Below are positions 28,931 to 64,000 of a stretch of 64,000 nt of DNA, piece by piece. Location: contig NC_083409.1 of assembly GCF_020745735.1 (NCBI RefSeq), forward strand, positions 14,479,873-14,543,872, in the 5' to 3' direction. A program made the translations under genes and the position numbers. Position 1 is the first letter of the stretch. Every line of letters starts with the position of its first letter. Under the pieces are notes generated by a model. That model was not told the DNA's origin. It searched no databases and saw only the letters and a program-made list of their open reading frames with translations. Origin of the DNA: Hemiscyllium ocellatum (lineage: Eukaryota).

Positions 28931-29089
28931 AAACTTCTGGAGAGTTTCCACAAAACCCTGGAACACTGAACCCACTGGACTTTGAGCCCTGCTGTAGCTG
29001 TTTGTCATCAGAACTTTGCCAAGAGATAACCAAAGAGTGGAGAGGGTGTGGTTCTATGTGGGAATTTCAGGATACTTTGCAGTTCCTGG

Positions 29090-31740
29090 AATACCATGAG
29101 TACAGGAAGTGTGGTCAGTGACAGCGGTTGGAGCTCTGGGCTTCGGAGCTTGAGCAGCAGCTGGTGTCAGTGCGGAGCGTCCGTGAGGCTGAGAGCTCCG
29201 TGGAGAGCACGTTTCTAGATGTGGTCACTCTGCAGCTTCAGAGTATGCAGGGAGAGAGGGAATGGGGGAGCAGCAGACAGTCCAAAAGGACCAGGCAGCT
29301 AGTACAGGAATTCCCTGAGTGCATCCCAGTCTTCAACCAGGATTCAGTTCAGAATCCTGATGAGAATGATGGTTAATCTGGGGAATGCAGCCAGAGCCAA
29401 GTCCCTGGCAGCACATGTGGTCAGCTGTACAGGGGAGCACAAGAAGACTGGAAGAGCTATAGTGGGAGGAGATTTGAGCGTGAGGGCATCGAAAGGTGTT
29501 TCTGCAGCTGCAGATGGGAATCCAGGATGGTGTGTTGTCTCCCTGGTGCCAGGGTGAAGGATGTCACTGAGCGACTGCAGAGCACCCTGAGGGGAGAGGG
29601 GGAACAGGCAGCAGTTGTGGTCCACATCGGTCCCAGTGACAGTGGGAGGAAAGGGATGTGGTCCTCCAGTCAGAATTTAGGAGCAGGAGCTAAAAGGTAG
29701 GAATCTTCAGATTACTCCCATTACCACATGCAAGTGAGAAGAGGAACAGGAGGGTAACACAGGTGACGGTGGAGCTGGAGAAAGGGTCCAGGAGGCAGGG
29801 CTTTAGATTTTTTGGACATTGTGAGTGGGTCTGGGGGAGATGGCACCTGGACAGACCAGACAGTGTTGCTCCTGAACAGAGCTGGGACTGAGTTCCTTTG
29901 AGGTGATTTACTAGTGCTGTTGGTGAGGGTTTAAACTAACGTGGCAGGGCTGTGAGAGCCAGGGGGAATATCAGAGAGGAACACCAAGGTCCACAGAATT
30001 CTCAGTGCAGTCAATAAGTCACCAGCCAGTGGGAAGGATGTGGAGGAATGCAAATGCAAGGAATTTACAGAAACCTGCAAATATGATCGAGCCGTTATAA
30101 ATGGGGGAAAGGGGTATTTAATTTCTGAATATAGACTGGGATAGTAGCAATGTAACGGGCAGAGAGGGGTGAGAGGTGTGAGACTGTGTTCAGGTGAATT
30201 TTCAGGTGGCATCGTGGCCAGTGAAAAAGGCTGTCTAAGAGTACAATGGGATCTTGACCAACTGGGCCAGTGGGCTGAGGAATGGCAGATGGAGTTTTAT
30301 TCAGATAAATGTGAGTGCTGTATTTTGGGTAAGACACAGGAGATGGGTGAGATTCTAAACAAATATTTCAGGTCAGTATTTATTGTGGAGAAGGACATGA
30401 ATGCGAGGGAATTTGGAAAAAATAGTGATGCTTTCAAAAAGTCCACAATACAAATGAGGAGATGCAAAAGGTCTTAAAACATTTAAAGGTAGATAAATCC
30501 CTAGGACCTGATCAGGTATATCCCAGAACATTGTGGGAAAAGAGGGAAGAGATTGCTGGGCCCCTTGCTGAGATATGTTTATCATTGACAGCTACAGGTA
30601 AGATGTTGGAGAACCAGAGAGGTTGGCTAATGTTGTACCATTATTTCAGAAAGGCTATAAGGAAAAGCTAGGGAACTATAGACCAGTGAGCATGATGTCA
30701 GTGCTGGGTAAGATGTTGGAGTGGATTCTGAGGGACAGGATTTCCATCCATTTGGATAATCAATGTGGTTTTGTGCGTGGGAAATTGTGTCTCCCTGATT
30801 TAATTGAGGAGGTGACAAAGAAGATTGATGAAAGCAGAACAGTAGACACTGTCTGTATGGACTTCAGTAAAGTATTTGACAAGGTTCCACATGATAGACT
30901 GGCGAGTAAGGTTAGACCACATGGGATTGAGGGGGAGCCAGCCATTTGGGTAAAAAAATTAGCTTGAAGATAGGAGAGAGGGTGTGGCGGTAAAGGGTTG
31001 ATTTTCAGATCGGAGATCTGTGAATAGCTGTGTGCCGCAAGGAGTGGTGCTGGGTCCACTGCTTTTGGTCATTTAAATAAATGATTTCACCTGAATATAG
31101 GAGTTAACATAAGTGTGTAAAAGACATCAAAATTGGTGGGACAGTGGATAGTGAAGAAGATTATCTCAGGGTACAGTGGAACCTTGATCAGATGGGGCAA
31201 TGGACAGAGGAGTGGGAAATGGAGTTCAGTTTAGATTAATGTGAGGTGTTGCACTTTGGAAAGGCAAACCAGGGCAGGAGTTATACAGTAATGGTAGGGC
31301 CCTGTGGAGTGTTGCTGAACAAAGACACCGAGGGGTGAGGGGTGAGGGGTGAGGGGTGAGGGGTGAGGGGTGAGGGGTGAGGGGTGAGGGGTGAAGGGTG
31401 AAGGGTGAAGGGTGAATGTAAGGGAAATGTGCATTATTCCTTAAAACTGGATCACAGGGAGACAGGACGATGAAGAAGGTGTCGGGAACCTTTGCCTTTA
31501 TTGGTCACTGTATTGAGGATAGGAGTTGGGTCATCATGTTGCAGCTGTACAGGAGATTGGTGAGGCCAGTTTGGGAATAATGTGAACAATTCTGATCATT
31601 CTGTGATAGGAAGGATGTTGTTCAACTTTTAAAAGGTGCAGAAAAAGATTTACAAAGATTTTGTGAGGAATTGGAGGGTTTGAACGATAGGGAGAGGATG
31701 AATCGGAACATCGGAGGCTGAGAAATTTATAAAATCATGA
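29090..31740 (+). mobile_element. CR1 ORF1 (esterase-like) and ORF2 fragments
   Basis: AIVGGDLSVR...CCLPGARVKDVTERLQ...VVHIG (ORF1 SGNH-like), then RT remnants. Mirrored at 62200-63900 on the minus strand. Confidence 0.85.
31330..31413 (+). repeat. (GAGGGGT)9(GAAGGGT)3 microsatellite, G-quadruplex-capable
   Basis: Twelve 7-bp units counted directly; absent from the paralogous arm. Confidence 0.95.
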
Positions 31741-32702
31741 GGGACACAGATAATGTGACTAATTCAGGAATGTTTTGGATAGATGACAAATTATATTCCC
31801 AAAAGTCATTCCAGGGATGAGGAACATCAGTTATGAAGATCTACTGGAGAATTTGGGACTGTCTTCTTTGGAGAAGGCTGGAAGCAGATTTATTCGAGGA
31901 ATTCAAAATCAGGAGGGGCCTGAACAGAATAAATAGGGAGAAAATGTTCCCAATTGAGAAAAGATTAAGACTGAGAGAACACAGCTTGAAAGTAATTGGG
32001 AAAAGTAACAAAAGTGAGACAAGGAAAAACATTTTCGGCCAGTGGGTGGTTAAGGTGTGGAATGCACTGCCTGAGAGTGTGGTGGAGGCAGCTTCAATTA
32101 AAACATTCTGAAGGGAATGAGACTGTTAGTCGAAAAGGAATTATGTGCAGGGTGACAGGGAGAAGGCAGGAGAATGACACTCAGTGAATTGCTCATTCAG
32201 AGAACCAGTACAGACAGGATGGGTGGAATGGCCTCCTTGTGCACTGTAACAATTCTGTGATTGTGTGGTTGAGCAGAGTTAAAGCTGGGGGAGGTGGGAG
32301 CTCGGTGTCTCACTGTGCTGCTGCTGCTGCTGCTGAGGTCAGTGAGATCAGAGACTGGGACAGGGAGCCAGAGCTCACATCAAACTCTGCCCGTGTCTGT
32401 CACACTGAGACTGGCAGGAGGCTACTCACTGATTTCACTCCATGCTGCAGGAATGGGACCACAGGCTGCAAATGGACAGAGCTCCTCCACACGGTGAGTA
32501 AAACTTACTGACTTATATCTTGCTTTTTAAAGGGGGCAATGGAACGAAATAAAATACAGCTGGACACACTATTAGACACAATGCTCCTCAATCAACTATT
32601 TCATTCACTGCAGCTTCTCACGAACACCTTCAACAATTCAGCATTTGTGTTTTAGAAATTGTGTTTGACAGGGTTAACAACAGAGGAATGAGGTTTACTT
32701 AC

Positions 32703-33029
32703 TCAGTCTGAGCTTGGTTCCTGGACCGAACGTGAATGTGCTGTAATGCTGCATACAGTAATAGTCAGCGACATCCTCATTCTGAACGTTGCTGATTGTC
32801 AGGGTGAAACTGGTCCCTGATCCACTGCCGGTGAATCGCTCGGAGACTCCTGTGAATCGAGTTGCTGCACTGTAGATCAAGACAGAGGGTTTCTGACCTT
32901 CTCGATGCTGGTACCAAGCAAGGGAGCTGCTAATGCTTTGACTGGCCGTACAGGTGAGTGTTGCGGTCTGGTCCAGTCCCACTGACAGCACCGGGGGAGA
33001 CTGAGTCATGATAATGTCCCCACTGATAC
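32703..33029 (-). CDS. IGKV: Germline-joined Ig kappa VJ exon, in frame
   Basis: Acceptor tcag at 33033-33030 and donor GTAAGT at 32702. [26 protein letters not shown]...WYQH...[21 protein letters not shown]. No heptamer or nonamer between V and J; 327 nt keeps the frame with leader and C. Confidence 0.96.
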
Positions 33030-33215
33030 CTGAGGGGTCAGAGAGTAACACAGTGAAGTCAGAACTGTCACAGAAAGAGCCTGTCAAATGAGAGATTGTT
33101 GGAGACACTGAGCATTCCTCTGGTTTCAGCATTTTCCCTTCAATCACAAGTCAGTGGAATTGGAGTGAAATGGAGACCAGCTAAAGATTCAAGGTGGAAG
33201 GAGAGAGATTTGTAC

Positions 33216-33264
33216 CTGTGACACAGAATGCCAGGGGCCAGATCAGCTGGATGTGTGAAATCAT
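33216..33264 (-). CDS. IGKV: Ig kappa leader exon
   Basis: ATG at 33264; MISHIQLIWPLAFCVT-G; donor GTAC at 33215; 186-nt intron, same length as in the paralog. Confidence 0.93.
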
Positions 33265-33324
33265 GGTGTGTGCTCCTGTCCCTGTGCCTGGTTCCTGATA
33301 AACTCTCCCTTCACTGGGCTCTGC

Positions 33325-33404
33325 TTTATAAAGCTGCAGCCTGTGAGAGTCTGACTGGGTGTTCCTCAGTATGTAAATGGCATCAGGCAGAGAGAGCCAC
33401 GTCA
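33325..33404 (-). promoter_or_regulatory. V promoter: TATA, octamer variant, CRE/UPRE-like site
   Basis: TTTATAAA 33325-33332; ATTTACAT (one mismatch to ATTTGCAT) 33371-33378; TGACGTGG 33397-33404. Confidence 0.75.
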
Positions 33405-34399
33405 GCCCCTCACACTTCCGCTCCTGTCTCTGTCTCCCCATTTTCCCTCTCTCTCTCTCTGTCTATCCTAGAGAGACATTGATGTGAACTGTGCTGAATT
33501 AGACCATTTGTCCCATTGTGTCTGTGTTGGATAACAAAGACCTTGACAAACTAATCCCATTTTCCCACTCTTGGTCCATAGGCTTGGAAGCTACAGCCAT
33601 GCAAATGTATATCTAAACACTGCTGCAATGTCACGAGAGTTTGTGACTCAAACAGCCTTTCAGGCAGTGAGTTCCAGACTCCCATCACCCTCTGGGTGAA
33701 AACATTTCTCCTCAACTCACCTCTCACACTCTAAGTCGACTGGGCCTGAACTCACTTGAGTTCAGAAGGATAAGAGGGGATCAGATTGAAATGTATAAAT
33801 TTCTAACAGGGCTGGGCAGGGAGGAGGTTTCCCTGGTTGGGAATTCTGGAACCAGGGGACCCAGTCTTGGGGGATACAAAGTTGACCATTTAGGCCTGAG
33901 ATGAGGAAACATTTCTTCACTCAGAGGGTAGTCAACCTGTTGAACTCTGTACCTATGATCCTGACAGCTATGGAGGAGAGAGAATTGAATATATTCAAGA
34001 TTATTGTTTTGCCTTTTCACAGCATGAATGGAATGGGGAAAAAGCAGGAATATGGCTTTGAGATGGAGGATCAGCCATGATCATACTGACTGACAGAGCA
34101 GACTCAAAGGGCTGAGTGGGCTACTCCTGTTTCTGTGTTTCTGTGTCTGTGTTACCCTCAGTTTCTGACCCTAGTTTCTGACTCCTTTATCCATGTAACA
34201 AATGCCTTCCTGTCGAATCTATCTGTGCCCCTCATAACCTTACAGTCCTCTGTCAGGTTTCCTCTCAACTTTCACTGCTCCAAGGAAAACAATCCCAGTC
34301 TTTCCAATCTTTCCTCATCACTCAGACCCTGCAGCCCAGGCAGCATCCTGGGAAATCTCTGCACCTTCCCGAGTACAATCACTTCCTTCCCACAATGTG

Positions 34400-34880
34400 G
34401 TGACCGGATCTCTTTCTCACTTTCTCTCTTTATCACTCTCTCTCTCTTCCCATTCTGTCTCACATCTGCCAACTCTTTCTCTCTATCTCTCTCTTTGGCA
34501 CTCCTAATCTCTCCCATCCTCTCTCTCTCGCACTCTGTCCCATCATCACTCTCTTCAACTCACTCACACTTTCTCACTCTGTCTCATCATTTCTATTTCT
34601 CCATCTCTCACTGTTTCCCTCATTCCGTCCCTTTCTTGTTTCTTATCTATTCCTTCTTCTTTCTCCATCCTTCCTCTCCATCTACCTGGTCTCTCTCTCT
34701 CTCTCCATCCCTCTTAGTCACACTATTTCACACCCTATTTCTTTCCCCATTTCCCTCAACCTCACCATCTCTACTTCCATCTGCATCTCTCTCGCTCCCT
34801 CTACACACCTCCCTCTCTCTCTCACACACACTCTCCCTCCAACTCTCATTCTTTCTCCCTTCCCTCTCTTTCCCACAGTA
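34400..34880 (+). repeat. Polypyrimidine (CT-rich) tract, mirrored by the GA tract at 58720-59225
   Basis: Low-complexity CT sequence in both arms about 1.1-1.6 kb upstream of the ATG. Confidence 0.85.
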
Positions 34881-34944
34881 TCCCAGATGGTGACAGTTAA
34901 TTGCAGGGCAAATCTCCCTCTGCTCTGTCCCACTAATGGATGTT

Positions 34945-35246
34945 CGACTGGGACAACACTACTATTGTAGGACAAGCCAAACAGAGAACAGTCAGGGAAT
35001 TCCTAGAGGCATGGTACTCATCCACAGATTCAATCAACAAGCACATCGACCTGGACCCAATATACTGTCCACTGCAGCGGACAGCTGGAACTGACAACCG
35101 GAAGCGGCAGATACAAATCACTACAAATGCCGGAGGAAAGATCACAGAAGTGCTTCACAGGAGGCTCCCAAGCACTGAGGATGTCACCTAGATAGGGACG
35201 AAACATCTGCAACACAAATTCCCAGCTCGGCGAACAGAACCACAAC
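34945..35246 (+). mobile_element. 5'-truncated Penelope-like insertion with a 10-bp target-site duplication
   Basis: DWDNTTIVGQAKQRTVREFLEAWYS. Flanked by AATGGATGTT at 34935-34944 and 35247-35256; the paralog near 58650 carries the empty site. Confidence 0.92.
35172..35210 (+). ncRNA. Penelope-associated minimal hammerhead ribozyme relic
   Basis: GCA-CUGAGGA-U-GUCaCCU(agau)AGGGAC-GAAA-CAUC-UGC: catalytic core and stems I and II are present; the stem-III palindrome reads ACAU instead of ACGU. Confidence 0.55.
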
Positions 35247-35679
35247 AATGGATGTTAACCCTTAACCTCAGAAGCATGTCTTCTCCTGGAGTAAGGCCCC
35301 ATTTTCCACATTGACCAGGCATTAGCCTGTCTCAAGATGATGGACAGATTCTTGTTAAATGAAGACAGTTCTGTGCTGTTGGCCTATTCTCACTGGGGAC
35401 TGGTTTGGACACAAACCTCATTCCATGAAGATCCAGCAGAGAGAGGAGATCCTCAGGCCATCAGTGTGAGCTGGGGGGACAGGACAGGATCTGACCCACT
35501 GACTCATCCTGTTCATTCACAACATGTTCCAATCCCTTCCCCTCTCCTTCCCCTTCCACAGTCAGGCTCTGGGTCAAGGTGTTTTACTGGGATGAGGTCA
35601 GGACCATCACACAATTACACCCGAAAGGAATTGAGCCCCACATCCACCATGATATCCATGACCCACTGGGACTCTCCAA

Positions 35680-35995
35680 TGGAGACCAGTAAACATAGGC
35701 CTCCTTCCCAATGGATATCCAGCAGAGACCAGTATATATGGATCTCCATACTATTGGATCATCCAATACATATCAGTAAACATGGACCTCCATTACACTG
35801 GGCCCTTCAATAGACACCAGTAATCATAGGCCCACAGCCCACTGGATGCTCCAATAGACTCCAGTAAACATGGGTCACCATCTCACAAGATACTTCAGTA
35901 GAGACCAGTAAACTAGGGCCTTCTTTCCCCTGAACCTTACAATAGAGACCAGTAGGCATGTATCCTGTTCCCACTGATCCTCAGTAAACATGGGC
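35680..35995 (+). repeat. Degenerate ~44-bp minisatellite (core AGAGACCAGTAAACATGGGCC), about 8 units
   Basis: Core recurs near 35681, 35723, 35770, 35812, 35857, 35900, 35944 and 35981; reverse copy at 58030-58260. Confidence 0.75.
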
Positions 35996-36639
35996 TTCCA
36001 TGCCGCTGCACCCTTCAGTATCTGAGCTTCAAACCGCACATCCTCTCCATCACATGGGCCTCTTTTCTATCTCCACAACATTGTCTCTCTGCACTATGTC
36101 AGCTCCTTGACCACAGAAACCCTTATTCCTGTTCATCCCACCTCCTAACTCCATAATCCTGATGTCCTCTCCCACCTTCCTTCCACCCACTCCATAAAGC
36201 CCAACTGTCTGAAATGGAGTGGTCATTTCCCTGTCTCACACCAAGGAGGAGATGGGCAGATATTTAATGGGTAATGGGTTGAAAGAATCATGGAGAGTGA
36301 GCAGGAAAATGGAGTTGAGTCTGAGATGGGATCAGCCATGATTGTATTAAATGGTGGAGTGGGCTTGAGGGGCTGAATTGCCTGCTCCTGCTCCTAGTTC
36401 GTATGCTCATCCACCCTCTCCCCCATCCCTCTTACTGCAACTTTGTGAACCATCTTAGAATGTTTTGAATATTGAAGGTGCGATATGAATTCAACATTTG
36501 TGTGGATTTAATGTGGGGACAGAATTGTGCAGGGGGCTGTGAAATCTCCTGCAGTTGAATATCCTACTAGCAAACTTCAGCCTTCCACATACAGAATGGG
36601 AAAGTCGGGGAGGTCAAAATGTGATGTTGGGGTCCTTGG

Positions 36640-38780
36640 TACTGTCCCCCAGCAATGTGGTTGACTCTCTATTGCCCTGTGAAATGGCCGAGCAAGGCTC
36701 TCAGTTGTATCAATTGTGACGACCTCTTAACAAAGAAATGAAACTGGACGGACCACAGGCATCGATGCAGATACAGTAAAGGTATTGACATACCTGCTCC
36801 ATCCTTCTTACTGACATCTGGGGGCAAGTGCCAAATTCAGGAGAGCTGTCTCACAGACTTGTCAAGCAACAGCTTGACACAGCCATACTCACAGACTCAT
36901 ACCTTACAGACAATGTCCCAGACACCGCCATCACTGTCCCTGCATGTATCCTGTCCCACCAGAAAGGCAAACCCAGCAGAGCTGATGACACAGTAGTCTA
37001 CAGCCAGGAGGGAGTTACCCTGAGAGGCCTCAAAGTTGATTCCAGACCCCATGGAGTCTCATGACTCCAGCCTAAACATGGGCGAGGAAACCTCCTGGTG
37101 ATTACAAGATATCTTGCTCCCTCGGCTGATGAATCAGTCTCTCCTGGATGTTGAACAGCACTTGGAGGAAGCACTGAGGGTGGTGACAGCACAGAATGTA
37201 CTTTGGGTGGGGGGGTTTCAATGTCCACCAATGAGAGTAGCTCGGCAGCAGCATTACTGATCGAGCTGATTGGTTCCTAATGGGTGTAGCTGAGGGACTG
37301 GCTCTGCAGCTGGTGGTGAAGGAACCAAATAGATGGAAAAACGTACTTGACCCCATCCTCACCAATCTTGCGGCTGTAGATGCATCTGTCCTTGACAGTA
37401 TTGGTAAGAGTGACCATAACACAGTCCTTGTAGAAACAAAGTTTGACCTTCACATTGAGAATACCCTCCATTGTGTTGTGTGGTACAATCACCGTGCTAA
37501 ATAGGACAGACTCCAAACAGATATTGCAACTCAAGGCAATGATCATGAATGGGGAGCATTGCCAATGTGTGCACAATCTCAACATCTCATATACTGAAAC
37601 AGTCCATGTTCGATTGCAGCAATATCTGCACAATATCCAATTTCATCTGAGAAGCAATATTTCCCATTGGTGCCATGCAAATACCAGCCAATGACCATCA
37701 CCAATAAAAGACAATTTAGCCATCGTCCCTTGACAGTCAATGCTATTACCATCACTGAATCCCCACTATCAACATTCTGAGGTACCATTGACCAGAAACT
37801 CAACTGGACTCACCACAGAAACACAGTGATTACATGAGCAGGTTAGAGGCGAGGAATACTGTATCGAGTAACTCACCTCCTGATTCCTCCAAAGCCTGTC
37901 AACCAAGTCAGGAGTGTGATCGAATACTCCCCACCTGCCTGGATAGGTACAGCTCCAACAACATTCATAGAATAATGGTGTCACAGAGTCATACAGCACA
38001 GAAACAAACCCTTAAGCCAAACTTCTATATTCTGACCAGGTTTTCTGAAGTGAACGAGTCTCATTTGCCTGCATTTGGCCCATATCCCTCAAATCCATTC
38101 CTGTCTATGTCTATCATATCCTGTGTCATTCTTATCCACTCAGAAAGCTTGATACCATCCAGAGCCAAGCAGCCTCCTTGATTGGCATCACATCCACAAA
38201 GCATCCACTCCCACCACTGCTCCATAGCAGCAGCGTGAATTATTGATCAGATGCTCAGCAGAAACTCACCAAAGATCCTCAGATAGCACCTTCCAAACCC
38301 ATATGGGAAAATAGAAATTGCACGAAAAGCTCAGCAGATCTGGCAGCATCTGTGGAGAGAAATCAGAGCACGAAATGTTAACATTGATTTCTCTTCACAG
38401 ATGCTGCCAGACCTGCTGAGCTTTTCCAGCAATTTCTATTTTTGTCTCAGATTTACAGCATTTGCAGTCCTTATGGTTTCCTTCCAAACCCACGTTCACT
38501 TCCATTTAGAACAACAGCAGCAGATACATGGGAACACTGAGCTGCAAGTTCCCCTCAAAAAAAGCTTAGCATCCTGACTTGGAAATGTATCACTATTCCT
38601 TCACTGTCACTGGGTCAAAATGCTGGCATTCCCTCCCCAAGAGCATTGTGGGTCAACTTACAGCTTGTGGACTATAACAATTCAAGATGGCAGCTTCCCA
38701 CCACCTTCTCCAGGGCAACTAGGGACAGGGTAAAAAATGTTGGCCCAACCAGTGAAGCCCACTTCCCACAAGTGAATATG
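36640..38780 (+). mobile_element. Decayed CR1/L2-group LINE (APE region to 3' tail)
   Basis: LVKQQLDTAILTDSYLTDNVPD..., GGFNVH, LDPILTNL and the 3' tail ttcaag...cagggcaactagg. Confidence 0.8.
38302..38479. mobile_element. Penelope-terminus-derived foldback mini-element with a 13-bp TSD
   Basis: 38308-38365 pairs with 38385-38442 (54/58), 19-nt loop; CCTTCCAAACCCA at 38289-38301 and 38480-38492. Confidence 0.85.
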
Positions 38781-39039
38781 CAAAACCAAATGAAGTGTTC
38801 CTCAGGAGGGGAGAGGGAATGTTCAGGATCCTGAACTCCATTTCCCAGCCCAGGCAGTTTGTCTCCCAATGAATGAATGAGATGCCAATTTGAAGCCCAG
38901 CTTCAGAGCAGTATCACTCTGTGGACATGAGGTCTATAAGAGGGAATTGGAGATTGAGCTGAAAAGGAAAGATTTGCTGAGTTATGGGGAGAGAAGCAAT
39001 GGGGCTAATTGAGTAATTGAAAGGCATGATGGGCTGAAT

Positions 39040-39960
39040 GGCCTCCTCCTGTGCTGTCAGATTCCAGGCAGTGGAGATGGCTCACAGTTTTCTTCTGTCT
39101 CAGTAACACACATCCAGCTGCTCCGAGCTCCTTCTTTCACTTCCTCTTTGGTGAAGTTTCAACCTTGCGATCTGACAGTCTTTGCAGTTATTTTTTAAAC
39201 TGGGGCTTTCTGCTGTGATCAGAATCTCTAATAATAAGTGTCCAATCAGTGACAATCACAGCAGCTGAGAGCAGTCAGGACTGAGGAGCCAGGCTCACTG
39301 GGAAACACATTGGGAAGATCAAAGTCATCCTCTTCAGCTCCCGGTACAACTCCATCCCTCTCCCTGAGCACTGTCTGCTGCTCAACCAGACTCTTTATAA
39401 CTTTGGCCTCATCTTTGAGGCTGATTTGAGGCCCAAGTCCTCCACATCATAAAGATCATCCACTGAAAATCTCAGCCATTTTTTTGGGACTCCAAATGTG
39501 ACCATTCCAATGTTATCCAGGCCCACGTCACAGCCACTGCCTTCCGTAAATATCAGCTCATCCCAAATCTGCTATCGGTGTTCCAACTCACACCAAGTCC
39601 ACCCCACACCCCCGCCTCTGTCTTCCATCCCACCATGACCACCACAATCCTCACTGACCGACATCAGCTCCTGGTCCAGCAACACCTTGATTTTCAAATT
39701 CTCATCCTTGTTCTCAATCCGCTCCCTGTCCTTCTATCCTCCCTATCTCTGTGACCTCCTGCAAGCCACCTCAGTGTGGTCAGCAATCTTGGATATATGC
39801 TTTCTTCATCCAAGTCATTGAAAAATATCGTGAAAAGCTGAGGTCCCAGCACAGATCCCTGGCAACACCACTATTCACATCTGGCTCATTGGAACACAAA
39901 CACATTATCCTTCCTCTCTGTCTCCTAGACAGACCCATTTCTGACACAAGGTAAATGCAT
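39040..39960 (-). repeat. Left middle arm of the inverted duplication (pairs with 55060-55935), including an L2 fragment at 39310-39760
   Basis: Reverse-complement match, for example QVIEKYRE.LRSQ in ORFs 39751+ and 55050-. Confidence 0.92.
39100..39180 (-). promoter_or_regulatory. Candidate B-cell enhancer (EICE + E-box), copy 1
   Basis: GGAAGTGAAA (reverse of 39135-39144) plus CAGCTG 39115-39120; non-TE sequence conserved with copy 2. Confidence 0.6.
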
Positions 39961-40251
39961 TTCTCAAATTCCATCCGATTCCATGATTTGGAGGTGCCAG
40001 TGTTGGACTGTCGTGTACAAAGTTAAAAATCACAGAACACCAGATTGTAGTCCAACAGGTTTGTTGGAAACACCAGCTTTCTGAGCGGTGCTCCTTCACC
40101 AAGTGATTGTGGAGTGCAAGATCTGATTCCATGTTTCTTTTGTGGAATGTTCTTAAATGTCTTGTGGAATTCCCTGTGGACAATAGCCATCGGCATTCCC
40201 TTATATCCCACATTAGGGAACTCCTAACAATGTGTAACCTCGTTAGTTAAA

Positions 40252-52920: not shown

Positions 52921-52929
52921 TTGAACTGA

Positions 52930-54190
52930 GGAAGCTCAGTGGGACAGATTGATCTTGGGGTACTTGCCTACTGATCTCTGAATGTGGCTAGACAGGTTAA
53001 CAGAGCAGTTATGAAGGCACTTGCATTTGTCATTTCAGGTATTGGTTATAAAAGCAGGAGAATATGGTGCAGTTAAGCAGAACATTGGTTAGGCCACAGC
53101 TGGAGTACTGTGTACAGTTCAGGTCAACACACTGTAGGAAGGATTTGATTGCACTTGATGGGGTGCAGAGGGGAATCACCAGGATGTTTTGTGGGATGGA
53201 ACCTCTCAGTGATGAAGAGAGATTGGATCAGCTCGGGTTGTTTTCTTCAGAGCAGAGAAGGTGGAGGGGGGACCTGATAGAGATGTATAAGGTTATGAGG
53301 GGAATGGACAGGGAGGAGAGAAAGCAGCTATTCTCCTTTGTGGGAGCGTCAATAACAAGTTGGTTCACATTCAATGTGAAAGATAGGAGGTTTCAAGATG
53401 CTTTGAGGAAATTGTTTTTCACCCAGAGGATGGTGTGGGTCTGGAATGCACACTGTGGGAGGATGGTTGAAGTGGGAAACCTCACAAACCTTAAATAGTG
53501 CTTGGGTGAGCAGTTAAAATATCAGAACATTAAAACTATGAGCCTTGTGTTGGAAAGGGAGACTGGTGTAGGTTTAGTGTAAATTGGTTGGTACACAGTT
53601 AATGGGCCAAAGGGCCTCTTCTGTACTGTGTGATTTTATGATTCTATTGCATGCAGTTTTGGATTCAGTATCTGAGGAAGGATGTTCTGGTTGTGGGGGG
53701 AGGGCAATGAAGGTCTACCAGACTGATCCCTGGGACGACAGCACTTATATCTGTTGAGAAACTGGATCAGTTAGGACCATATTCGCTGGAAGTTAGAAGA
53801 TTGAGAGGAATCACATTGAAACCTTCAAAATCCTAACAGGACAAGACCGGAAAAACACAGGAAGGAGTTCCTAATGACTGGAGAATCCAAAACCAGGAAT
53901 TACAGTTTAAAGAAAAGGAAAAGGCCATTTCGGACTGAGATGAGGAGATATTTCTTTAGCCAGAGAATGGGAAGCTGGTGGAATATTCTGTCACTGAAAG
54001 CAGTTGAGCCCAAACCATTAAATGTTTTCAAGAAGATGATAGGTACAGTTCTTGGGACTGAAGGGATTAAAGGTTATGGGGGAAATTGGGAACAGGGGAC
54101 AAAGTTGAATAATCAACCATGGTCATATTGAATGGTGGAGCTTACTCAAAGGGCTGAATGGCCTCCTCCTGCTCCAAGTTCCTTTGCTTC
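52930..54190 (+). mobile_element. Two CR1 3' fragments
   Basis: ORFs 53064+ (LVRPQLEYCVQF) and 53874+. Confidence 0.85.
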
Positions 54191-54249
54191 TTTGTATGAG
54201 AGATTGTTCATAAACATGGAAACAATGGAATTTATAGAGTCACAGAATC

Positions 54250-55030
54250 ATCGAGTCCTACAGCACAGAGACAGGTCCTTTGGCCCAAATTGGTCCACGC
54301 TGACCGAAACATCCATCCATGCAAACCCCATTTCCCTGCTCTTGGCCCATATCCTTCAAAAGTTTTCCTATCTATGTATTTGTCAAAATACCTTTTAAAT
54401 GTTGTTAATGTACCCGCTTCAATCATTTCCACTGGCAGCTCATTCCATATGCGGATGACCCTCTCTGTAAAGATGTTGTCCCTCAGGTTCCCTTTTATTC
54501 TAACCTTAAACTGATGCCCTCTAGTCCTCGATTCCCCAACTCTGGGAAAAAGACTGAGTGCATTCACTCTATCCATGTCTCTCATGATCTTATATACTTC
54601 TGAAAGATCCCCCTCAGTCTCCTACTCTCTAAGAAATAAGTCCTAATTTTCCCAACCTCTCCCTGTAACTCAGATCATTGAGTCCAGGCAACATCCTTGT
54701 AAATTTATTCTGTACTCTTTGTGATTTAATAATATCCTTCCTATAACAAGGTGACCAAAACTGAACACAATACTCCAAGTGTAATCTCACCAATGTACTG
54801 TACAACTGTAAAATAACTTCCCAAATTCTATACCCGGTACCCTGACTGATGAAGGTCATGATACCGCTTCTTGTAATGTCATCTACAAACTTACTAATCA
54901 TGCTTTGCAGATTCTTATCCAAATTATTGATATAGATAACAAACAGTAATGGGTCCAGCACTGAACCCTGAGGCACTCCCTAAGTTACTGGCCCCCAGTC
55001 TGACAAGCAGCCTTCCACTATGACCCTCTG
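54250..55030 (-). mobile_element. CR1 3' fragment
   Basis: PQGSVLDPLLFVIYINNLD; LVRLHLEYCVQFWSP. Confidence 0.88.
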
Positions 55031-55799
55031 CTTCCTACTATTAAGCCAATTAAAGAAAAGTATTTGTGTTTGGTGAGGAATTCGTTTGGATGTAGGAGGC
55101 CTTTGGATGTAGGAGACAGAGAAGAGGGATAATGTGTGTGCTCTCCAATAATGTGAATATTGGTGTCTCCAGAGATCTACGTTGGGACCTCAGCCTTTCA
55201 CGATATTTCTCAATGACTTGGTATAGATTGCTGACCACACTGAGCGAGGCAGGTTGGAGGAGGTTACAGAGATAGGGAGGGTGGAGGACAGGGAGGGATT
55301 CGAGAACAAGGATGAGAATTTGATAACCGAGGTGTTGCTGATCCAGGAGGCAATGTAGACATGGCATGCAGGGGGTTGGGGGAACAGACGTTGGTGCAAG
55401 TTTGGACATGGGCAGAAGACTTTGGGAAGAGTGGAGGGCAATGACTGTGATGTGTGCAAGCACAACATTGGAATGGCTATGTTTGGAGTCACAACAGCAT
55501 GGCTGAGATTTTCAGTTTCTGATCTTTGTGATGTGGAAGATGTGAGGCTCAGATCAGCCCCAAAGATGAGGCCAAGGTTGTAAAGAGTCTGTTTGAGCAG
55601 CAGATAGTGCTCAGGGAGAGGGATGGAGTCTATACCAGGAGCTGAAGAGGATGACTTTGATCCTCCCAATATGTTTTCCAGTGATCCTGGCTCCTCAGTC
55701 CTGACTGCTCTAAGCTGCTGTGATTGTCACTGATCGGACACTTATTATTAGAGATTCTGACCACAGCAGAAAGCCCCAGTGTAAAAAAATAACTGTAAA

Positions 55800-55870
55800 G
55801 ACTATCAGATCGCAAGGTTGAAACTTCACCAATAGAGGAAGTGAAAGGAGCTCGGAGCAGCTGGGTGTTT
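55800..55870 (+). promoter_or_regulatory. Candidate B-cell enhancer (EICE + E-box), copy 2
   Basis: GGAAGTGAAA 55837-55846 and CAGCTG 55858-55863. Confidence 0.6.
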
Positions 55871-56099
55871 GTTACTGATATGGGAGAAAACTGTGAACTG
55901 TCTGCACTGCCTGGAACCTGACAGCACAGGAGGCTGGTTCTGGGATTTTTTTTTTACAGAAACAGCACAGTGATGGAAAAAGTGTCAGTCACTCTCTCAC
56001 AAACACACACACCTGCACTCAGAGATCAGAAACAGAAACCAGCAGCAGCGCTGTCTCCAAGCTGTGGAACCTAAACAGAATTGTTCCCTCATTCAGTTT

Positions 56100-58010
56100 T
56101 TATCTGGCAGGCTAGACCAAACAGCGGAGGCAACACAGTGGTGTGTACAGTCGGAAGGGAGTTGCCCTGAGAGTCCTCACCATTAACTATGGAATCCATG
56201 AAGCCTCATGACAGCAGGTCAAACATGGGGAAGGAAACCTCCTGCTGATTACCACATAGCACCGCCCTCCCCTCCAACCTCAACTGAGCAGTCAGTCCTC
56301 CTCCATGTTGACCAACACTTGGAGGGAGCACTGAGGGTGGGAAGGATGCAGGATATACCCTGAGTAAGGGACTTCAAAGTCCACCATCAAGGGCTGCTCA
56401 GAAGTATCACTACTGAGCAAGCTGGTCAAGTTCCACCTGATTCAGCTGCTAGACTGGACCTGGGGCAGGTGGTGAGGGAACCAACAAGAGGGAAAAACAT
56501 ACTCACTATCACCCTCACCAACCTGCCTGCTGCTGGTGTATCTGTCCATGACAGTATCAGTAAGAGTGACCATAGCACAGTCCGTGTGGAGACACAATCC
56601 CGTCTTCACATTGAGATTACCTTACATTTTGTTGGGCAAGAGATATGGAATATCAGGAAGGACTTTGTTTTTAGTAGCAATTGGTAATGACTTGGAAATT
56701 AGTGCCCATTCAGGTGAGGCAGGTGAAGACACTCAGTAATTGCAATGGCAGATTGGATGGGCTCTTGATGGAAATAAACCTGCAAGGCTCTGGGGGTCGA
56801 GTAGGGGAGGGGGTGGGACTGACTGGATTGCTCCATGAAATGACAGCATTTACCTGAGAGGCTGAATGTTCTCCCCCTGTGCTGGAAATAGGTCTCACTC
56901 AATGAGGGGTTCACAATTGGAGAGTTTAGATGCAGCAAATACAGGACAAATTGTTTCTCCAGGCAGGAGGGTCAGTAACCAGAGGGCACACATTTCAGAA
57001 AGGGTCTGAAGAACAAGAGAGAAGATAGGAACATTTTTATCCAGCGAGTTCATGATGACTGTCTGCAAGGTGAGTGGAAGTGGATTCAACAGCAACTTTC
57101 AAAAGGGCATTTAGAGAAATAGCTGAAAAGGAAACAATTGCAGGGTTATACAGGAAGGGCTAGGTAAATGGGACTCATTGGACTAATTTGACTAACAGTC
57201 ACAATAGGCCCAATGACCTCTGTCTGTGCTGTATAAGAGCTCACACACACTTAGACTCACCTTTACACAAAGACCAGGAGAAACAGGCACCCATTTTACA
57301 GAAGATTGTTTTCTCAAGCAAAATTTACAGTGTCCAAATGTGGCCTTACCAATGCCTTGTACAGCTGTAACATAATGTCCCAACTCCTGCACTCCCTGCT
57401 TTCACCAGTGAAGGTGAGCATGCCAAATACTTTCTTCACCAACCTGTCTGGTCCCACTTCCAAAGAACTATGTACCTGTACCATTAAGTCTCTCTGGTCC
57501 CCATGGCTCCACCATTCATTGTGTAATTCCTGCCCTGGTTTGTCTTATCAAAATGTAATTCCTTGCACTTATCAAAATTAAACTCCATCTGGATTTGTTG
57601 ACCCACTGGCCCAGTTGATCAAGATGACATTACACTCTGGATAACCTTCTTCCCGGTCCACTATGCCAACAATTTTAATGTCAGCCACAAACTTACTGAC
57701 CATTCCTGCTATTTTCTCATCCAAATTGTTCATATAAATGATGAACAACAGTGGATCCAAGATTGGTTCTTGTGGCAGACGGCTGGTCACTGGCTTCCAG
57801 TCTGAAGAATAACCCTCTCTCACCAGCCTCTGCCTCCTACCATCAGGCCAATTTTATATCCAATTGGCTAGCTCTCCCTGGATCCTCTGTGATATCATCT
57901 TACTGAGCAGTCTACCATAGGGAACCTTGTATAAGGCCTTGCTAAAGCCCATGTAGACGGTGCGCACTGCTTTACCGTGATCTATCTTCTTGATTACTTC
58001 TTCAAAAACT
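56100..58010. mobile_element. LINE fragments: CR1/L2-group APE (+, 56100-56620), CR1 tail (+), CR1 RT (-, 57260-58010)
   Basis: VREPTRGKNILTITLTNL; LPQEPILDPLLFIIYMNNLDEKIAGMVSKFVADIK. Confidence 0.75.
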
Positions 58011-60171
58011 CAGTCATCTGCTCATCTCCATTGGAAACTCCAATGAACAGTAGGCCCATGTTTACTGGTCCCTCATGGAGGATCCAGTCAGAAGGAGGCC
58101 CATGTTTACTGTTCTCCTTTAGAGAATCCAGTAGGAAGGAGGCCAATGTTTAATGGTTTTCTAGCTTCAGTGATAAAGAGGCCTATGTTTCTCCATTGAG
58201 CAGCCTTGTGAACTGAATTTCATGTTTACTGGACTCTGTTGGAGTATCCAGTGTTTCATGGACATCATGGCTGGTGTGTGGCCGAGCTTCTTTCTGTTGT
58301 AACTGTGTGATACTCTGACCCTCATACCAGTCAAACAGCCTGACTCAAAGACTGATCATGGAAGGGGAAGGAAAGCGAAGGGATTGGAACATGTTGCGAA
58401 TGCATTGGATGGGTCAGTGGGTCAGAGCCTGTCCTGTCCCTCCAGCTCACATTGAGGATCTCCTCTCTCTGCTGGGCCTTCATGAAATGAGCTTTGAGTC
58501 CAAACCAGTCCCCAGTGAACATAGGCCAACAGCACAGACTACCCTTCATTTGACAAGAATATGTCAGTCTTCCTGAGAGAGACTAAACCCTGGTCAATAT
58601 GGGAATTGGGACTTTACTCCAGGAGAAGACATGCTTCTGGGGTCAAGGGTTAACATCCATTAGTGGGACAGAGCAGAGGGAGATTTATTCTGTATTCAAC
58701 TGTCACCACCTGGGACACTGTGAGAAAGAGAGAGAAGTGAGATAGAGAGGTAGAGGGTGGATGTATGTTTGTGTAATTGAGGGAAAGATGGGGGAGCATC
58801 TGAGACAGTGTGAGATATGTGAGGGGACCAAGACCAAGGTAGAGGGAGGTAGAAATGGTGAGGTTGAGGGATAGAGAGAGAGAGAATCAAGATGTGACTG
58901 AGAGGGATGGAGAGAGAGAAAGAGACAGGATGGGTGTGATACCAAGAATGAAGGGAATCAAGAGAGAGAGAGTAGGGTTGAGTGTGTGTGAGAGAGAGAG
59001 ATAGATGAGCATGGTTAGAGACAAAATGGCAGAGAGGGAGGAAGAGAGACTGTAGATTGGGAATGCAGACAGGGAGGGAGAGACAGAGAGAGGAATAGAG
59101 AGGGGCAATTAACATTTGGAGGTTTTCAATTGATGTGAGAGATGCAGTGAGTGACAGTGAGAGAGAAAGATGCAGAAATAGAGATTATGAGACAGAGTGA
59201 GAGTGAGAGAGAGAGAGAGAGAGGTCTTGGTCACCACATTCTGGGAAGGATGTGATTGTACTTGAGAGGGTGCAGAGATTTCCCAGGATGCTGCCTGGGA
59301 TGGAGGGTCAGCTGTGAGGAAAGCTTGGAAAGGTTGGAATTGTTTTCCTTGGAGCAGTGAAGGCTGAGAGGGGACCTGATAGAGAGGGATAAGATTATTC
59401 GGAGCAGTGATAGGGTGGGCAGGAAGGCACTTTTTAAAAGAGTCAAGGATTCAATAACCAGGGACAGAGATTGAAGGTAACACAGACATGGCCACACAGA
59501 AACTGCTGCAGGAGTAAACCATTCGGCCCTTTGAGTCTGCTCTATCATTCAGTATGATCATGGCTGATCCTCCATCTCAAAGCCATATTCCTACCTTCTC
59601 ACCAGTCCCTTCATGCTTTGAAAATGCAAAACAATTATCTCTCTCTTTCTCTTGAATATATTCAGTTCCTTGTCCTCCATAGTTTGACTACCCTCTGAGT
59701 GAAGAAATGTTTCCTCATCTCAGTGTGTAATGGTCTACGCTGTATCCCCCTGAGATTGTGACCCCTGGTTCCAGACTCCCCAACCAGGGGAAAACCTCCT
59801 CCCTGCCCAGCCCTGTTAGAATGTCATATGTTTCAATCAGATCCCCTCTCATCCTTCTGAACTCGAGTGATATCAGGCCCAGTTGAGTTAGAGAGTGAGA
59901 GGTGAGTTGGGGAGAAATGTTTTCACCCAGAGGGTGGTGGGAGACTGGAACTCACTGCCTGAAAGGCTGGCTGAGTCACATACTCTTGTGATATTAGAGC
60001 AAGGTTTAGATATTCCTTTGTGTTGCTTAGCCCCCAAGTTAATGGGTGAGGAGGTGGCAGATGGGATTAGTGTCATCAGATCTTTGCTGACCAGTTTAGA
60101 CACAATGGGCCAAATGGCCTCAGTCAGTGCTGTTAACATGAATGACTATCTGAGACAAAGAGAGAGAATGG

Positions 60172-60205
<34 letters not shown>

Positions 60206-60241
60206 GACAGAGACAGAGAGAGAAGAGGAATTGTGAGGGGC

Positions 60242-60321
60242 TGACATGGCTCTTTCTGCCTGATGCCATTTACATACTGAGGAACACCCAGTCAAACTCT
60301 CACAGGCTGCAGCTTTCTAAA
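60242..60321 (+). promoter_or_regulatory. Decayed V promoter of the pseudogene
   Basis: TGACATGG (was TGACGTGG), ATTTACAT kept at 60268-60275, TTTCTAAA (was TTTATAAA). Confidence 0.7.
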
Positions 60322-60381
60322 GCAGAGCCCAGTGAAGGGAGAGTTTATCAGGAATCAGGCACAGGGACAGGAGCACACACC

Positions 60382-60916
60382 ATGATTTCACACATCCAGC
60401 TGATCTGGCCCCTGGCATTCTGTGTCGCAGGTACAAATCTCTCTCCTTCCACCTTGAATCTTTAGCTGCTCTCTATTTCACTCCAGTTCCACTGACTTGT
60501 GATTGAAGGGAAAATGCTGAAACCAGAGGAATGCTCAGAGTCTCCAACAATCTCTCATTTGACAGGCTCTTTCTGTGACAGTTCTGACTTCACTGTGTTT
60601 CTCTCTGATCCCTCAGGTATCAGTGGGGACATCATCATGACCCAGTCTCCCCGGTGCTGTCAGTGGGACTGGACCAGACTGCAACCATCACCTGTAAGGG
60701 CCAGTCAAAGCATTAGCAACTACCTTGCTTGGTACCAGCAGTGAGAAGGTCAGAACCCCTCTCTCCTGATCTACAATGCAACAACTCGATACACAGGAGT
60801 CTCCGAGTGATTCACCGGCAGTGGATCAGGGACCAGTTTCACCCTGACAATCAGCAACGTTCAGAATGAGGATGTCGCTGACTATTACTGTCAGCAGTAT
60901 TACAGCTGGTCTTACG
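60382..60916 (+). pseudogene. IGKV: Ig kappa V pseudogene lacking both J and RSS (leader 60382-60430, V 60617-60916)
   Basis: Leader MISHIQLIWPLAFCVAG. A -1 deletion near 60651 and a +1 insertion near 60699 compensate but lose the first Cys; CGA>TGA stops at 60742 and 60808. Ends [12 protein letters not shown] and fuses directly to J-C intron sequence. Confidence 0.95.
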
Positions 60917-61299
60917 AAAACACAAATATTGAATTGTTGAAGTATTGCAGTGAATGAAATGATTGATTGAGGAGCACTGTGTCTAACAGGGTGTCCAGCT
61001 GTATTTCTTTAGTTCCATTGGCCCCTTTAAGCAGCAAGACATAAGTCAGTAAGTTTTACTCACTGTGTGAAGGAGCTCTGTCCATTTGCAGCCTGTGGTC
61101 CCATTCCTGCAGCATGGAGTGAAATCAGTGAGTAGCCTCCTGCCAGTCTCAGTGTGACGGACGCGGGGCAGATTTTAATGTGAGCTCTGGCTCCCTGTCC
61201 CAGTCTCTGATCTCACTGACCTCAGCAGCAGCACAGTGAGACACCGAGCTCCCACCTCCCTCAGTTTTAACTCTGCTCAATCACACAATCACAGAATTG

Positions 61300-63900
61300 T
61301 TACAGTGCACAAGGAGGCCATTCCGCCCATCCTTTCTGGACCAGCTCTCTGAATGAGCAGTTCACTGAGTGTCATTCTCCTGCCTTCTCCCTGTCACCCT
61401 GCACATTGTTCCTTTTCAAATAATAGCCTCATTCCCATTGGAATGTTTCAATTGAAGCTGCCTCCACCACACTCTCAGGCAGTGCATTCCACACCTTAAC
61501 CACCCACTGGCTGAACATGTTGTTCCCCATCTCACTTGTGTTACTTTTCCCAATTACCTTCAATCTGTGGTCTCTCGGTCTCAATCATTTGTCAATTGGG
61601 AACATTTTCTCCCTATTTACTGTATCCAGGCCCCTCGTGGTTTTAATTCCTTGAACAAATCTCGTCTCAGCCTTCTCCAAAGAAGTCAGCCCAAATTCTC
61701 CAAACTATCTTCATAACTGATGTTCCTCACCCTTGGAATGATCGTTGGGAATATATTTTGCCATTTCTACAAAACTTCACCTGCTCCTTGAATGATTCAC
61801 ATTATCTATGTCCCTCATGGTTTTATAAACCTCTGTATTGTCACTCCTCAGACTCTTGCACTTCAGGTAAAAAAGTCTCAGCTTTTCCAGCCCCTCATAG
61901 TCATGGAGTCATACATCGTGGAAATAGACCCTTCAATCCAACTTGCCTGTGCTAATCAGATATCTTAAACAGACCTCATCCCATTTGCCAGTATTTGGCT
62001 TACATTCCTCGAAACCTTTCTTATCCATGCACCGATCCAAATGTGTTTTAACTGCTGTAATTGTATCTGCCTCCAACACTTCCTCTGGCAGCTCGATCCA
62101 GACATGCACCACCCTCTGTGTGGCAAGTTCCCCCTCAGGTCCCTTTTGAAACTTTTCCTTCTCACCTTAAACCTATGCCGTCTTGTTTTGGACTCCCTTT
62201 CCCAAGGAAAAGACCTTGGATATACACCCTGTCCATGCCCCTCATGATTTTATGCACATCTATAAGGTCACCCCTTGGACTTGGATGCTGCAGGGAAAAT
62301 AGGCCCAATTTCTTCAGCCTCTCCCATCAGCTCAAACCCTCCAGTTCCTGGTCACGTCCTTGTAATTCTTTTCCGCAGCTTTTTAAGTTTAGCACCATCC
62401 TTCCTTTCACAGGATGATCAGAATTGTTCACATTATTCCCAAAGCGGCCTCACCAATCTCCTATATAGCTGCAACATGATGTCCCAACTCCTATCCTCAA
62501 TGCAGTGACCAATACAGAAAAGCGTACCCAACACCTTCTTCATCACTGTCTACATGCGACTCTACTGTCAAAGAATAACACACCTGCACCTTCACTTTCG
62601 GTCTCTTTGTTCAGCAACACTCCGTAGGGCCCTACCATTAACCGTATTGTCACATTTATCTGAACTAAAGTCCATCTGCCATTTCTCAGCCCACTGGCCC
62701 AGTTGGTCAAGGTCCCATTGTACTCTGAGACAGCCTTCTTCACTGTCCACGATGCCACCTGAAAATTCACCTGAACAGACTCTCACAACTCTGGCCCCTC
62801 CCTGCCCATTACACTGTTATTACGCCAGTCTATATTCAGAAATTAATGAGCCCACCTCCCCATTGATAACGACCTTATCATATTTGCAGTTCTCTGTAAA
62901 TTCCTTGCTTTGTATTCCTCTACATCCTTCCCACTGGGTGGTGACTTATTGATTGCACTGAGGATTCTGTGGTCCTTGGTATTCCTCTCTGATATTCCCC
63001 CCTGGCTCCCACAGCACTGTGAAGTTAGCTTAAACCCTCTCCAACAGCACTAGTAGATCATCCCAGAGGAACTCAGTCCCAGGTCTGTTCAGGAGCAACC
63101 CCGTTTAGTCTGTGCAGGTCCCATCTCCCCCAGACCCAGTCCCAATGTCCCAAGAATCTAAAGCTCGCCTTCCTGGAACCCTCTTTCCTGCAATTCAGTC
63201 ACCTGTGTTATCCTCCTGTTCCTCTTTTCACTTGCATGGGGCACTGGGAATAATCCAGAGAATCCTACTTTTGAGTTCCTGTTGCTAATTCCCTCCTGAG
63301 TTCCCTAAATTCTGACTGCTGGACCATATCCCTTTTCTCCCTCTGTCAATGGGACTGATGTGGACCACGACTGCTGCCTGTTCCCCCTCTCCCCTCAGGG
63401 TGCTCTGCAGCCGCTCAGTGACACCCTTGACCCTGGCACCAGGGAGACAACACACCACCCTGGATTCCCATCTGCAGCTGCAGAAACACCAATTGATAGC
63501 CCTCACTCTCGAATCTCCTCTCACTATCGCTCTTTCAGTCTTCCATGTGCCCCTCTGTACAGCCGAACCCTCCCCGTGGTGCCAGGGACTTGGCTCTGGC
63601 TGCACTCCCCAGATGAACCATCATTCTCATCAGGATTCTGAACTGAATCCTGGTTGGACAGTGGGATGCACTCAGGGGATTCCTGTACTAGCTGCCTGGC
63701 CCTTTTGGACTGTCTACTGCTCCCCCATTCCCTCTCTCCCTGCATACTCTGAAGCTGCAGAGTGACCACATCTAGAAACGTGCTCTCCATGGAGCTCTCA
63801 GCCTCACGGACGCTCCACACTGACACCAGCTGCTGCTCAAGCTCCAGAACCCGGAGATCCAACTGCTGTCACTGACCACACTTCCTGTGCTCATGGTATT
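61300..63900 (-). mobile_element. CR1 fragments mirroring 29090-32260, plus one arm-specific CR1 tail near 61900-62230
   Basis: ORF 63524- is nearly identical to ORF 29128+; ORF 63285- CCLPGARVKGVTERLQ. Confidence 0.85.
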
Positions 63901-64000
63901 CCAGGAGCTGGGAAACATTTGGAAGTTCCCACATGGATGCACACTCTCTCCACTCTTTGGTTATCTCTTGGCAAAGTCCTGATAACAAACAGTTACAGCA

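Follow-up and report, generated by a model that had tools for sequence, protein, structure and literature searches.

In sharks, the variable (V), joining (J) and constant (C) segments of an immunoglobulin (Ig) light-chain minicluster usually share one orientation (PMC5192425), and the kappa clusters of the nurse shark (type III, NS4) are a mixture of split genes and genes already joined in the germline, the joined ones including pseudogenes (Lee, Fitch and Hsu 2000, PMC2193156). These joined genes keep the octamer and regulatory sequences, and they have been attributed to RAG activity in germ cells (PMC2193156). The multiplication and neighbour arrangement of cartilaginous-fish Ig miniclusters are little documented, and our literature searches found no paper on the mutual orientation of neighbouring shark kappa clusters. 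Here we describe a 64,000-nt stretch of the Hemiscyllium ocellatum genome (NCBI RefSeq assembly GCF_020745735.1, contig NC_083409.1, positions 14,479,873 to 14,543,872 of the forward strand; hereafter the window, numbered from its first base), in which two kappa units stand head to head as the arms of a large interrupted palindrome. The likely explanation, in our judgement, is that these are two standard shark Ig-kappa (type III/NS4) minicluster units that came to face each other through an old inverted duplication, or an equivalent inversion, and that subsequently underwent independent spacer losses, insertions and drift.

The left unit, with its fused V and J, fits the germline-joined genes of the nurse shark, and the right unit resembles their dead examples. 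What differs is the setting: the nurse shark study used clones of 2-6 kb and is silent on neighbour orientation (PMC2193156), whereas here the arms are adjacent and show independent spacer losses. In human IGK, the proximal and distal V-kappa clusters are described as two large inverted segmental duplications (PMC11327106). The likeness to the present locus is that of a kappa locus with an inverted segmental duplication and with functional and pseudogene copies in its two arms; each shark arm differs, however, in being a whole V-(J)-C mini-gene unit, 12-17% diverged from its partner and with no conversion seen. The human arms extend over hundreds of kb, contain many V genes that share one J-C, are nearly identical and undergo ongoing exchange. 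The light-chain (IgL) loci of zebrafish and other teleosts have V segments opposite to J-C, and segments that bear a recombination signal sequence (RSS) are joined there by inversion, between clusters too (PMC3014032; review PMC5192425). Oppositely oriented light-chain segments within tens of kb are likewise present here, but V, J and C are co-oriented in the shark cluster and neither V has an RSS. The palindromes of sex chromosomes, which also consist of two inverted arms around a unique spacer, have arms that are more than 99.9% identical and are kept so by arm-to-arm gene conversion; the shark arms are 80-87% identical, without homogenisation.

The layout was obtained by blastn self-comparison of the window, with matches between 28990-46800 and 46801-64000 chained in both orientations. 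The top inverted colinear chain comprises 10 blocks, 6698 aligned bp and 6648 bits, a score roughly ten times that of the top direct chain used as a control (4 blocks, 1380 bp, 636 bits), which consists of long interspersed element (LINE) fragments only. Nesting of the inverted pairs is strict throughout, giving two reverse-complement colinear arms around a spacer (Table 1), and all four of the nested pairs proposed in the initial annotation of this DNA were recovered to within tens of bases. The leader ATGs of the two arms are 27.1 kb apart and head to head. Position 28990 mirrors 64000, the window edge, and the outer limit of the arms is therefore set by the window end only. This colinearity supports an interpretation of the arms as homologous kappa units, head to head, rather than as independent transposon insertions. 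We regard it as very improbable that the palindrome is an assembly artefact, whether a mis-join of two kappa loci within the LINE-rich spacer or a false inverted duplication. The spacer does contain a very high-copy LINE (48200-49600, with a word depth of 10^5-10^6 in public sequencing runs) that is prone to mis-joins; however, arms that are this diverged and that carry many private indels match neither a duplicated haplotype nor a chimeric fold-back read, and the nested blocks 2 and 3 flank the candidate join on both sides.

The left arm contains an intact germline-joined kappa gene. Its V (V-set), J and C (C1-set) all lie on the minus strand, with the C exon 10.6 kb downstream of J, and V is fused to J in an open frame, with no RSS between them and with the J splice donor intact; the germline-joined call assumes that the assembly represents germline DNA. 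Upstream of the leader are an octamer variant, ATTTACAT, at approximately 115 bp and a TTTATAAA box at approximately 60 bp. The nearest proteins to the left V are from bamboo shark, the best matches outside sharks are kappa V regions, and longer relatives bear the RefSeq label 'immunoglobulin kappa light chain-like' in C. punctatum, H. ocellatum and further sharks. Judged from these best protein matches rather than from an isotype tree, the affinity appears to be with kappa, not with lambda or sigma. We propose that, together with its C exon, the left arm still forms a usable gene.

The right arm presents a different picture. The initial annotation spoke of two kappa clusters head-to-head; two kappa V units are indeed so oriented, but the second is a frameshifted pseudo-V that has no J, and any right C exon lies beyond the window end, the window containing only leader and pseudo-V from this cluster. 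Two frameshifts disrupt the right V, a 1-bp deletion after 60648 and a 1-bp insertion at 60696; TGA stops follow at 60742-60744 and 60808-60810. A 76-bp gap follows 60911, where left-arm positions 32659-32734 have no counterpart; it takes the end of complementarity-determining region 3 (CDR3), the whole J, the splice donor and approximately 40 bp of intron, so that the right arm, being without J, is not a germline-joined VJ gene. In the right promoter, the TATA box is altered to TTTCTAAA. An RSS scan found no signal adjoining the V of either arm, and no 12/23 RSS pair is present here. Because related bamboo-shark contigs do carry 12- and 23-spacer RSSs, both copies are best read as derived forms from which the RSSs have been lost.

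For this comparison we used as an outgroup five contigs of the bamboo shark Chiloscyllium punctatum (GCA_003427335.1), labelled L001-L005. These are colinear with both arms across many kb at 84-93% identity, block 2 and the junctions of fossil transposons included: L001 tracks the left arm from 35568 down to 29222, and L002 tracks the left arm through block 2 (39983-38790), promoter and V into the J-C intron (31812), as well as the right arm from 49902 to 61735. All five have the ordinary split form: CACAGTG-12-ACAAAAACC follows V, and then come a spacer of 0.5-0.7 kb and GGTTTTTGT-23-CACTGTG, which precedes J. The shared unit measures at least 12-14 kb and carries a conserved island on its upstream side as well as promoter, leader, V, (J) and J-C intron, with fossil transposon fragments already part of it, since these fragments occupy identical junctions in the arms and in the bamboo-shark contigs. 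The decayed transposon junctions that the arms share had been cited as showing segmental duplication. They do indicate that the arms are homologous rather than the product of independent insertions; because the same junctions occur in C. punctatum, however, they are no proof that one arm was a fold-back copy of the other, and they belong to a family-wide kappa unit and are older than the separation of these lineages.

The split relatives also allow the two V-J junctions to be read base by base. In the bamboo shark, the germline V ends with TGT and 24 further nt, followed by the heptamer CACAGTG. The right arm retains 22 of these 24 nt (...AGCTGGTCTT), followed by ACG and then by intron from approximately 45 bp past J; the left arm retains 15, followed by AC and then by ATTCACGTTCGG of J. 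The right joint has V nucleotides absent from the left, and the left joint has J nucleotides absent from the right. No deletion can turn either junction into the other, because each keeps nucleotides that its counterpart has lost. On the simplest reading, the arms would have lost their V-J spacers independently, and, given that the junctions differ, the inverted pair would have formed while the gene was still split, before either event.

The right V (60892-60925, compared with the V ends of L001-L005) stops 2 nt before the heptamer border of the split relatives and then gives way to the J-C intron. Because the right-arm loss begins within 2 nt of that border, RAG-type cleavage is suggested, possibly producing an out-of-frame joint that was followed by a 73-bp deletion; a cryptic RSS was sought at the 3' edge of the right-arm deletion, and none was found. 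Joining between the clusters by inversion, which the palindromic geometry had been thought to allow, finds nothing to act on in this pair: the sole J in the window is already fused to the left V in the germline, no J remains at the right V, and both Vs are without an RSS. Teleost-type inversional V-J joining is impossible for the present pair, because no RSS is left.

The divergence of the arms bears on the age of the pair. Kimura two-parameter (K2P) distances between left and right, calculated per segment, are 0.104 in the proximal J-C intron, 0.119 in the upstream region, leader and V, 0.134 in the outer segment, 0.150 in 35247-35600 and 0.170 in block 2; in the same segments, either arm differs from the bamboo-shark contigs by 0.09-0.16, so that the distance between arms is about the distance between species. 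Maximum-likelihood trees, which contained the two arms and bamboo-shark sequences but no further kappa cluster of the H. ocellatum genome, group left with right, with support of 96/96 (1.35 kb, four taxa) and 86/94 (V exon, seven taxa). The inner branch uniting the arms is 0.017, and the tips are 0.056-0.074. Because arm divergence approximates cross-species divergence and this inner branch is short, the inverted pair is old. Pairwise distances had suggested that the arms are not sisters, a reading that we withdrew, since the trees join left with right.

An age of this order also leaves room for an account that we hold to be possible although not favoured, namely that an inverted pair formed once long ago and that pair and spacer were then copied along the array as a module. 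The right arm and L002 share an old LINE 3' end abutting block 2, with colinearity reaching 49902, and the left arm is without it, which leans slightly towards such copying; the similarity of arm-to-arm and cross-species distances and the alternating orientation of three cluster remnants in the window point the same way. Yet left and right still group at the support values given above, a spacer shared between pairs is a supposition, and plain deletion may account for the absence of the 2.2-kb segment from the left arm. The earlier proposal that shark light-chain clusters multiplied by repeated fold-back duplication is accordingly indistinguishable here from a single old inverted pair later amplified, or from inversion, the arms being about as diverged from the bamboo-shark contigs as from each other. 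We consider it improbable, although worth stating, that the shark kappa array is built from head-to-head kappa pairs, all amplified from one that arose by a single fold-back, and that the upstream space shared by the two clusters of a pair, with its two conserved enhancer-like islands face to face, might keep both clusters open in germ cells, so that germline RAG would strike neighbours together; if true, this would account for a pair in which both members lost the V-J spacer independently.

Whether the palindrome is active was judged from a sliding-window comparison of the arms, in which identity rises from a background of 83-90% to 93-98% in tracts at 32184-33382 and to approximately 95% at 29090-29389. 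Each promoter has a GA/CT microsatellite immediately on its upstream side (33380-33440 and 60190-60260), of different length in the two arms, and long CT-rich low-complexity stretches (34417-34824 and 58700-59200) explain an apparent dip in identity at those positions. Current exchange between the arms, by gene conversion or by V-J joining through inversion between clusters, is disfavoured and very unlikely. The geometry permits both processes, and the tracts of 93-98% around V and in the J-C intron are of the kind that conversion could leave. We tried arm-to-arm conversion as an explanation for these tracts and rejected it, however, because they are 95-100% identical to bamboo-shark clusters as well: in the multi-species comparison of promoter, leader and leader intron (33437-33012) and of the J-C intron (32508-32225), every pair of sequences is 95-100% identical, arms against bamboo shark included, which points to constraint on regulatory sequence, across clusters and species, such as Lee et al. 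noted for the NS4 genes of the nurse shark (PMC2193156). Moreover, the lesions of the dead right V remain unrepaired against the left arm, the background falls far short of the near-identical arms of a conversion-maintained palindrome of the Y-chromosome type, and neither V has an RSS. The arm-to-arm conversion that the initial annotation considered geometrically possible has thus left no sign, and the palindrome as such seems to have no demonstrated present function.

A rearrangement without duplication, in which one of two neighbouring tandem clusters was flipped, for example via oppositely oriented LINE copies, is unlikely. The spacer and both arm edges are rich in fragments of the same LINE families in both orientations, and the depth of arm divergence would fit old paralogues without a common origin event. 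The homology between the arms nevertheless continues inward, nested, through blocks 2 and 3 and possibly 4, to within approximately 1 kb of the centre; palindromic duplication predicts such nesting, whereas an inversion with arbitrary breakpoints would show it only if the unit happened to be long. We identified no pair of inverted LINEs at the flanks that would mark the breakpoints.

The course of events that we favour would begin with a cluster whose V and J were still separate and which, long ago, underwent inverted duplication or an equivalent inversion. Afterwards, the two arms and the spacer each received insertions of LINEs and short interspersed elements (SINEs) of their own, and the V-J spacer disappeared from the two arms in two distinct germline events, as the differing junctions indicate, with RAG as the putative agent in the right arm. 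The left arm would have acquired an in-frame V-J coding joint, its gene remaining usable with the C exon, while the right arm would have lost the interval from 2 nt before the V heptamer border to approximately 45 bp past J, the two frameshifts and two stops coming later. The arms have drifted to K2P distances of 0.10-0.17, except in a constrained promoter/leader/intron tract and in an element of the J-C intron.

Several points weigh against this history. The window includes neither the right C exon nor the outer end of the palindrome, and the 35-kb layout rests on the assembly, public unitigs being just 100-200 bp long and uninformative on large-scale layout. Patchy conversion with third clusters as donors could leave junctions that look independent; the start of the left CDR3, ATGCAG, is similar to L003, and CAGCAG...TGGTCTT in the right arm is similar to L002. 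The two arms may also group in the trees through shared species alone and need not be each other's nearest relatives within the genome.

With these qualifications, the locus offers a clean, dated example of an inverted kappa pair. It shows a large duplicated unit, at least 12-14 kb long, that is common to species, and it preserves a rare internal order of events: the duplication preceded the germline losses of the V-J spacer, of which there were two, one in each of the adjacent copies. This order fits recurrent RAG activity in shark germ cells. The layout is real but fairly ordinary for the kappa family; it establishes no new mechanism, and the locus does not settle the mode by which the family multiplied. 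Inverted kappa duplications and dead joined genes were already known, and the modest novelty is the pair of independent V-J spacer losses in adjacent arms.

Table 1. Features of the window and reverse-complement block pairs of its self-comparison.
Feature	Position	Strand	Description
Truncated C-kappa exon and 3' flank	5423..6186	+	last 28 codons and stop at 5423-5510; 91% and 83% identical to 21848-21232 (-)
Left C-kappa exon	21766..22083	-	C1-set, ends ...SECV stop; Pfam C1-set E=6.5e-23
Left arm	28990..40730	-	kappa minicluster unit: 3.7 kb J-C intron, VJ, leader, promoter, then upstream blocks 2 and 3; colinear inverted chain; colinear with L001, L002, L003
Left V-J exon	32703..33029	-	in frame, intact, V and J fused in genome; GTAAGT donor at 32702-32697; Pfam V-set E=7e-18
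Left leader exon	33216..33264	-	MISHIQLIWPLAFCVT, ATG at 33264; read from sequence
Left-arm-specific repeat insertion, 312 bp	34935..35246		absent from right arm and L001; further copy 7810-8102
Left-arm-specific inserted DNA, ~2.2 kb	36606..38789		includes LINE fragment 36988-37478; L002 has 36 bp here
Block 2 left	39045..39983	-	conserved 350-bp island 39050-39400, 5.8-6.1 kb upstream of leader ATG; island 93.5% identical to L002 3264-3615
Block 3 left	40138..40730		split by ~298-bp SINE-like insert 40253-40550; repeat copies also 8345-8661, 25394-25709
Spacer between arms, 8.8 kb	40731..49568		mostly LINE-like; includes block 4 pair
Block 4 left	44514..44778		75-bp extra internal segment
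Block 4 right	46825..47011		self-comparison alignment to block 4 left
Right arm	49569..64000	+	block 3', old LINE fragments, block 2', promoter, leader, pseudo-V, J-C intron start; window end cuts arm; colinear with L002 from window position 49902 to 61735
Block 3 right	49569..49856		uninterrupted; adjoins 3' end of high-copy LINE 48290-49568
Right-arm-specific LINE reverse transcriptase fragment	54226..55042	-	splits junction uninterrupted in L002; Pfam RVT_1 for 54632-54979 sub-threshold
Block 2 right	55050..55933	+	conserved island 55582-55928; 90.9% identical to L002 3268-3615
Right leader and pseudo-V	60382..60911	+	ATG at 60382; V-set fragment E=1.7e-4, under Pfam cut-off
Block pair	28990-30314 / 64000-62650	reverse-complement	86.8% identity
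Block pair	31434-31702 / 62578-62313	reverse-complement	82%
Block pair	31726-32653 / 61829-60917	reverse-complement	87.3%
Block pair	32740-34944 / 60906-58652	reverse-complement	79.8%
Block pair	35247-35696 / 58661-58222	reverse-complement	81.6%
Block pair	35816-35948 / 58157-58025	reverse-complement	71%
Block 2 pair	39045-39927 / 55933-55110	reverse-complement	79.8%
Block 3 pair	40138-40252 / 49856-49750; 40551-40730 / 49748-49569	reverse-complement	67%; 78.9%
Block 4 pair	44514-44632 / 47011-46893; 44712-44778 / 46893-46825	reverse-complement	94%; 85.5%

The suggestion that arm-specific LINEs pushed the arms apart is borne out by LINE and SINE insertions for which an empty site can be identified, in the bamboo-shark contigs for 34935-35246, approximately 36606-38789 and 54226-55042, and in the other arm for 40253-40550. 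With the same references, much of 50428-53357 in the right arm is a later addition. The LINE pieces at 36988-37478 (left) and 56133-56634 (right) are independent insertions, because their orientation is direct, not inverted. Target-site duplications were not convincingly readable for the SINE-like insert 40253-40550 or for the LINE at 54226-55042.

Toward the centre, block 3 begins 155 bp past block 2 in the left arm and 46 bp past the end of L002 colinearity in the right arm; we read it as the putative distal end of the kappa unit. The end of the adjoining plus-strand LINE (48290-49568) is defined by L001 9288 and L002 6200, and Pfam RVT_1 is above cut-off for 48118-48699. Elsewhere in the spacer, approximately 40800-44450 (+) contains LINE-like open reading frame (ORF) fragments, with the family judged by eye and two tested ORFs giving no Pfam hit, and 45824-46747 (-) contains LINE endonuclease and reverse transcriptase fragments, Exo_endo_phos_2 being sub-threshold for 45824-46069 and the reverse transcriptase part (46402-46747) being assigned provisionally from a blastn match to 28303-28635. 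Block 4 has no match among the bamboo-shark contigs L001-L005, and its approximately 190 aligned bp, at a pooled identity of approximately 90%, could, taken alone, be a chance pair of repeat fragments. Its 94% piece had suggested that block 4 is younger than the arms, an idea that we dropped because the pooled value over this length is not clearly different from the arms. Over 44000-49990, public short-read unitigs, which represent two studies and three samples, mismatch the window at the same 2-5% of bases, and approximately 45% of sampled 31-mers were found in public runs. The assembled individual is probably not the source of these runs, which may stem from a close relative or from near paralogues.

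On the far left of the window, the C-kappa remnant reported in the initial annotation is present as the last 28 codons and stop of the exon, tail to tail with the functional left C exon approximately 16 kb off. A further inverted pair, 2613-3978 / 12513-9738, straddles it. The resulting alternation in orientation among the three cluster remnants is equally expected under repeated fold-back or under module copying of one old pair.

Two further conserved tracts were apparent when the arms were aligned with the bamboo-shark clusters. Outside the 350-bp core, which is situated approximately 6 kb upstream of the V in both arms, the rest of block 2 is 72-75% identical to the bamboo-shark cluster, compared with 91-93.5% for the core. 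Within the J-C intron, approximately 200-480 bp downstream of J, a tract of approximately 280 bp (32225-32508 on the minus strand, 61050-61335 on the plus strand) shows 93-100% identity among both arms, L002 and L004, with flanks at 78-89%, and holds ATTTGCAG, TGTGGT and GGAGTGAAA-type motifs. This tract may be an intronic control element, its position being comparable to that of the mammalian kappa intronic enhancer.

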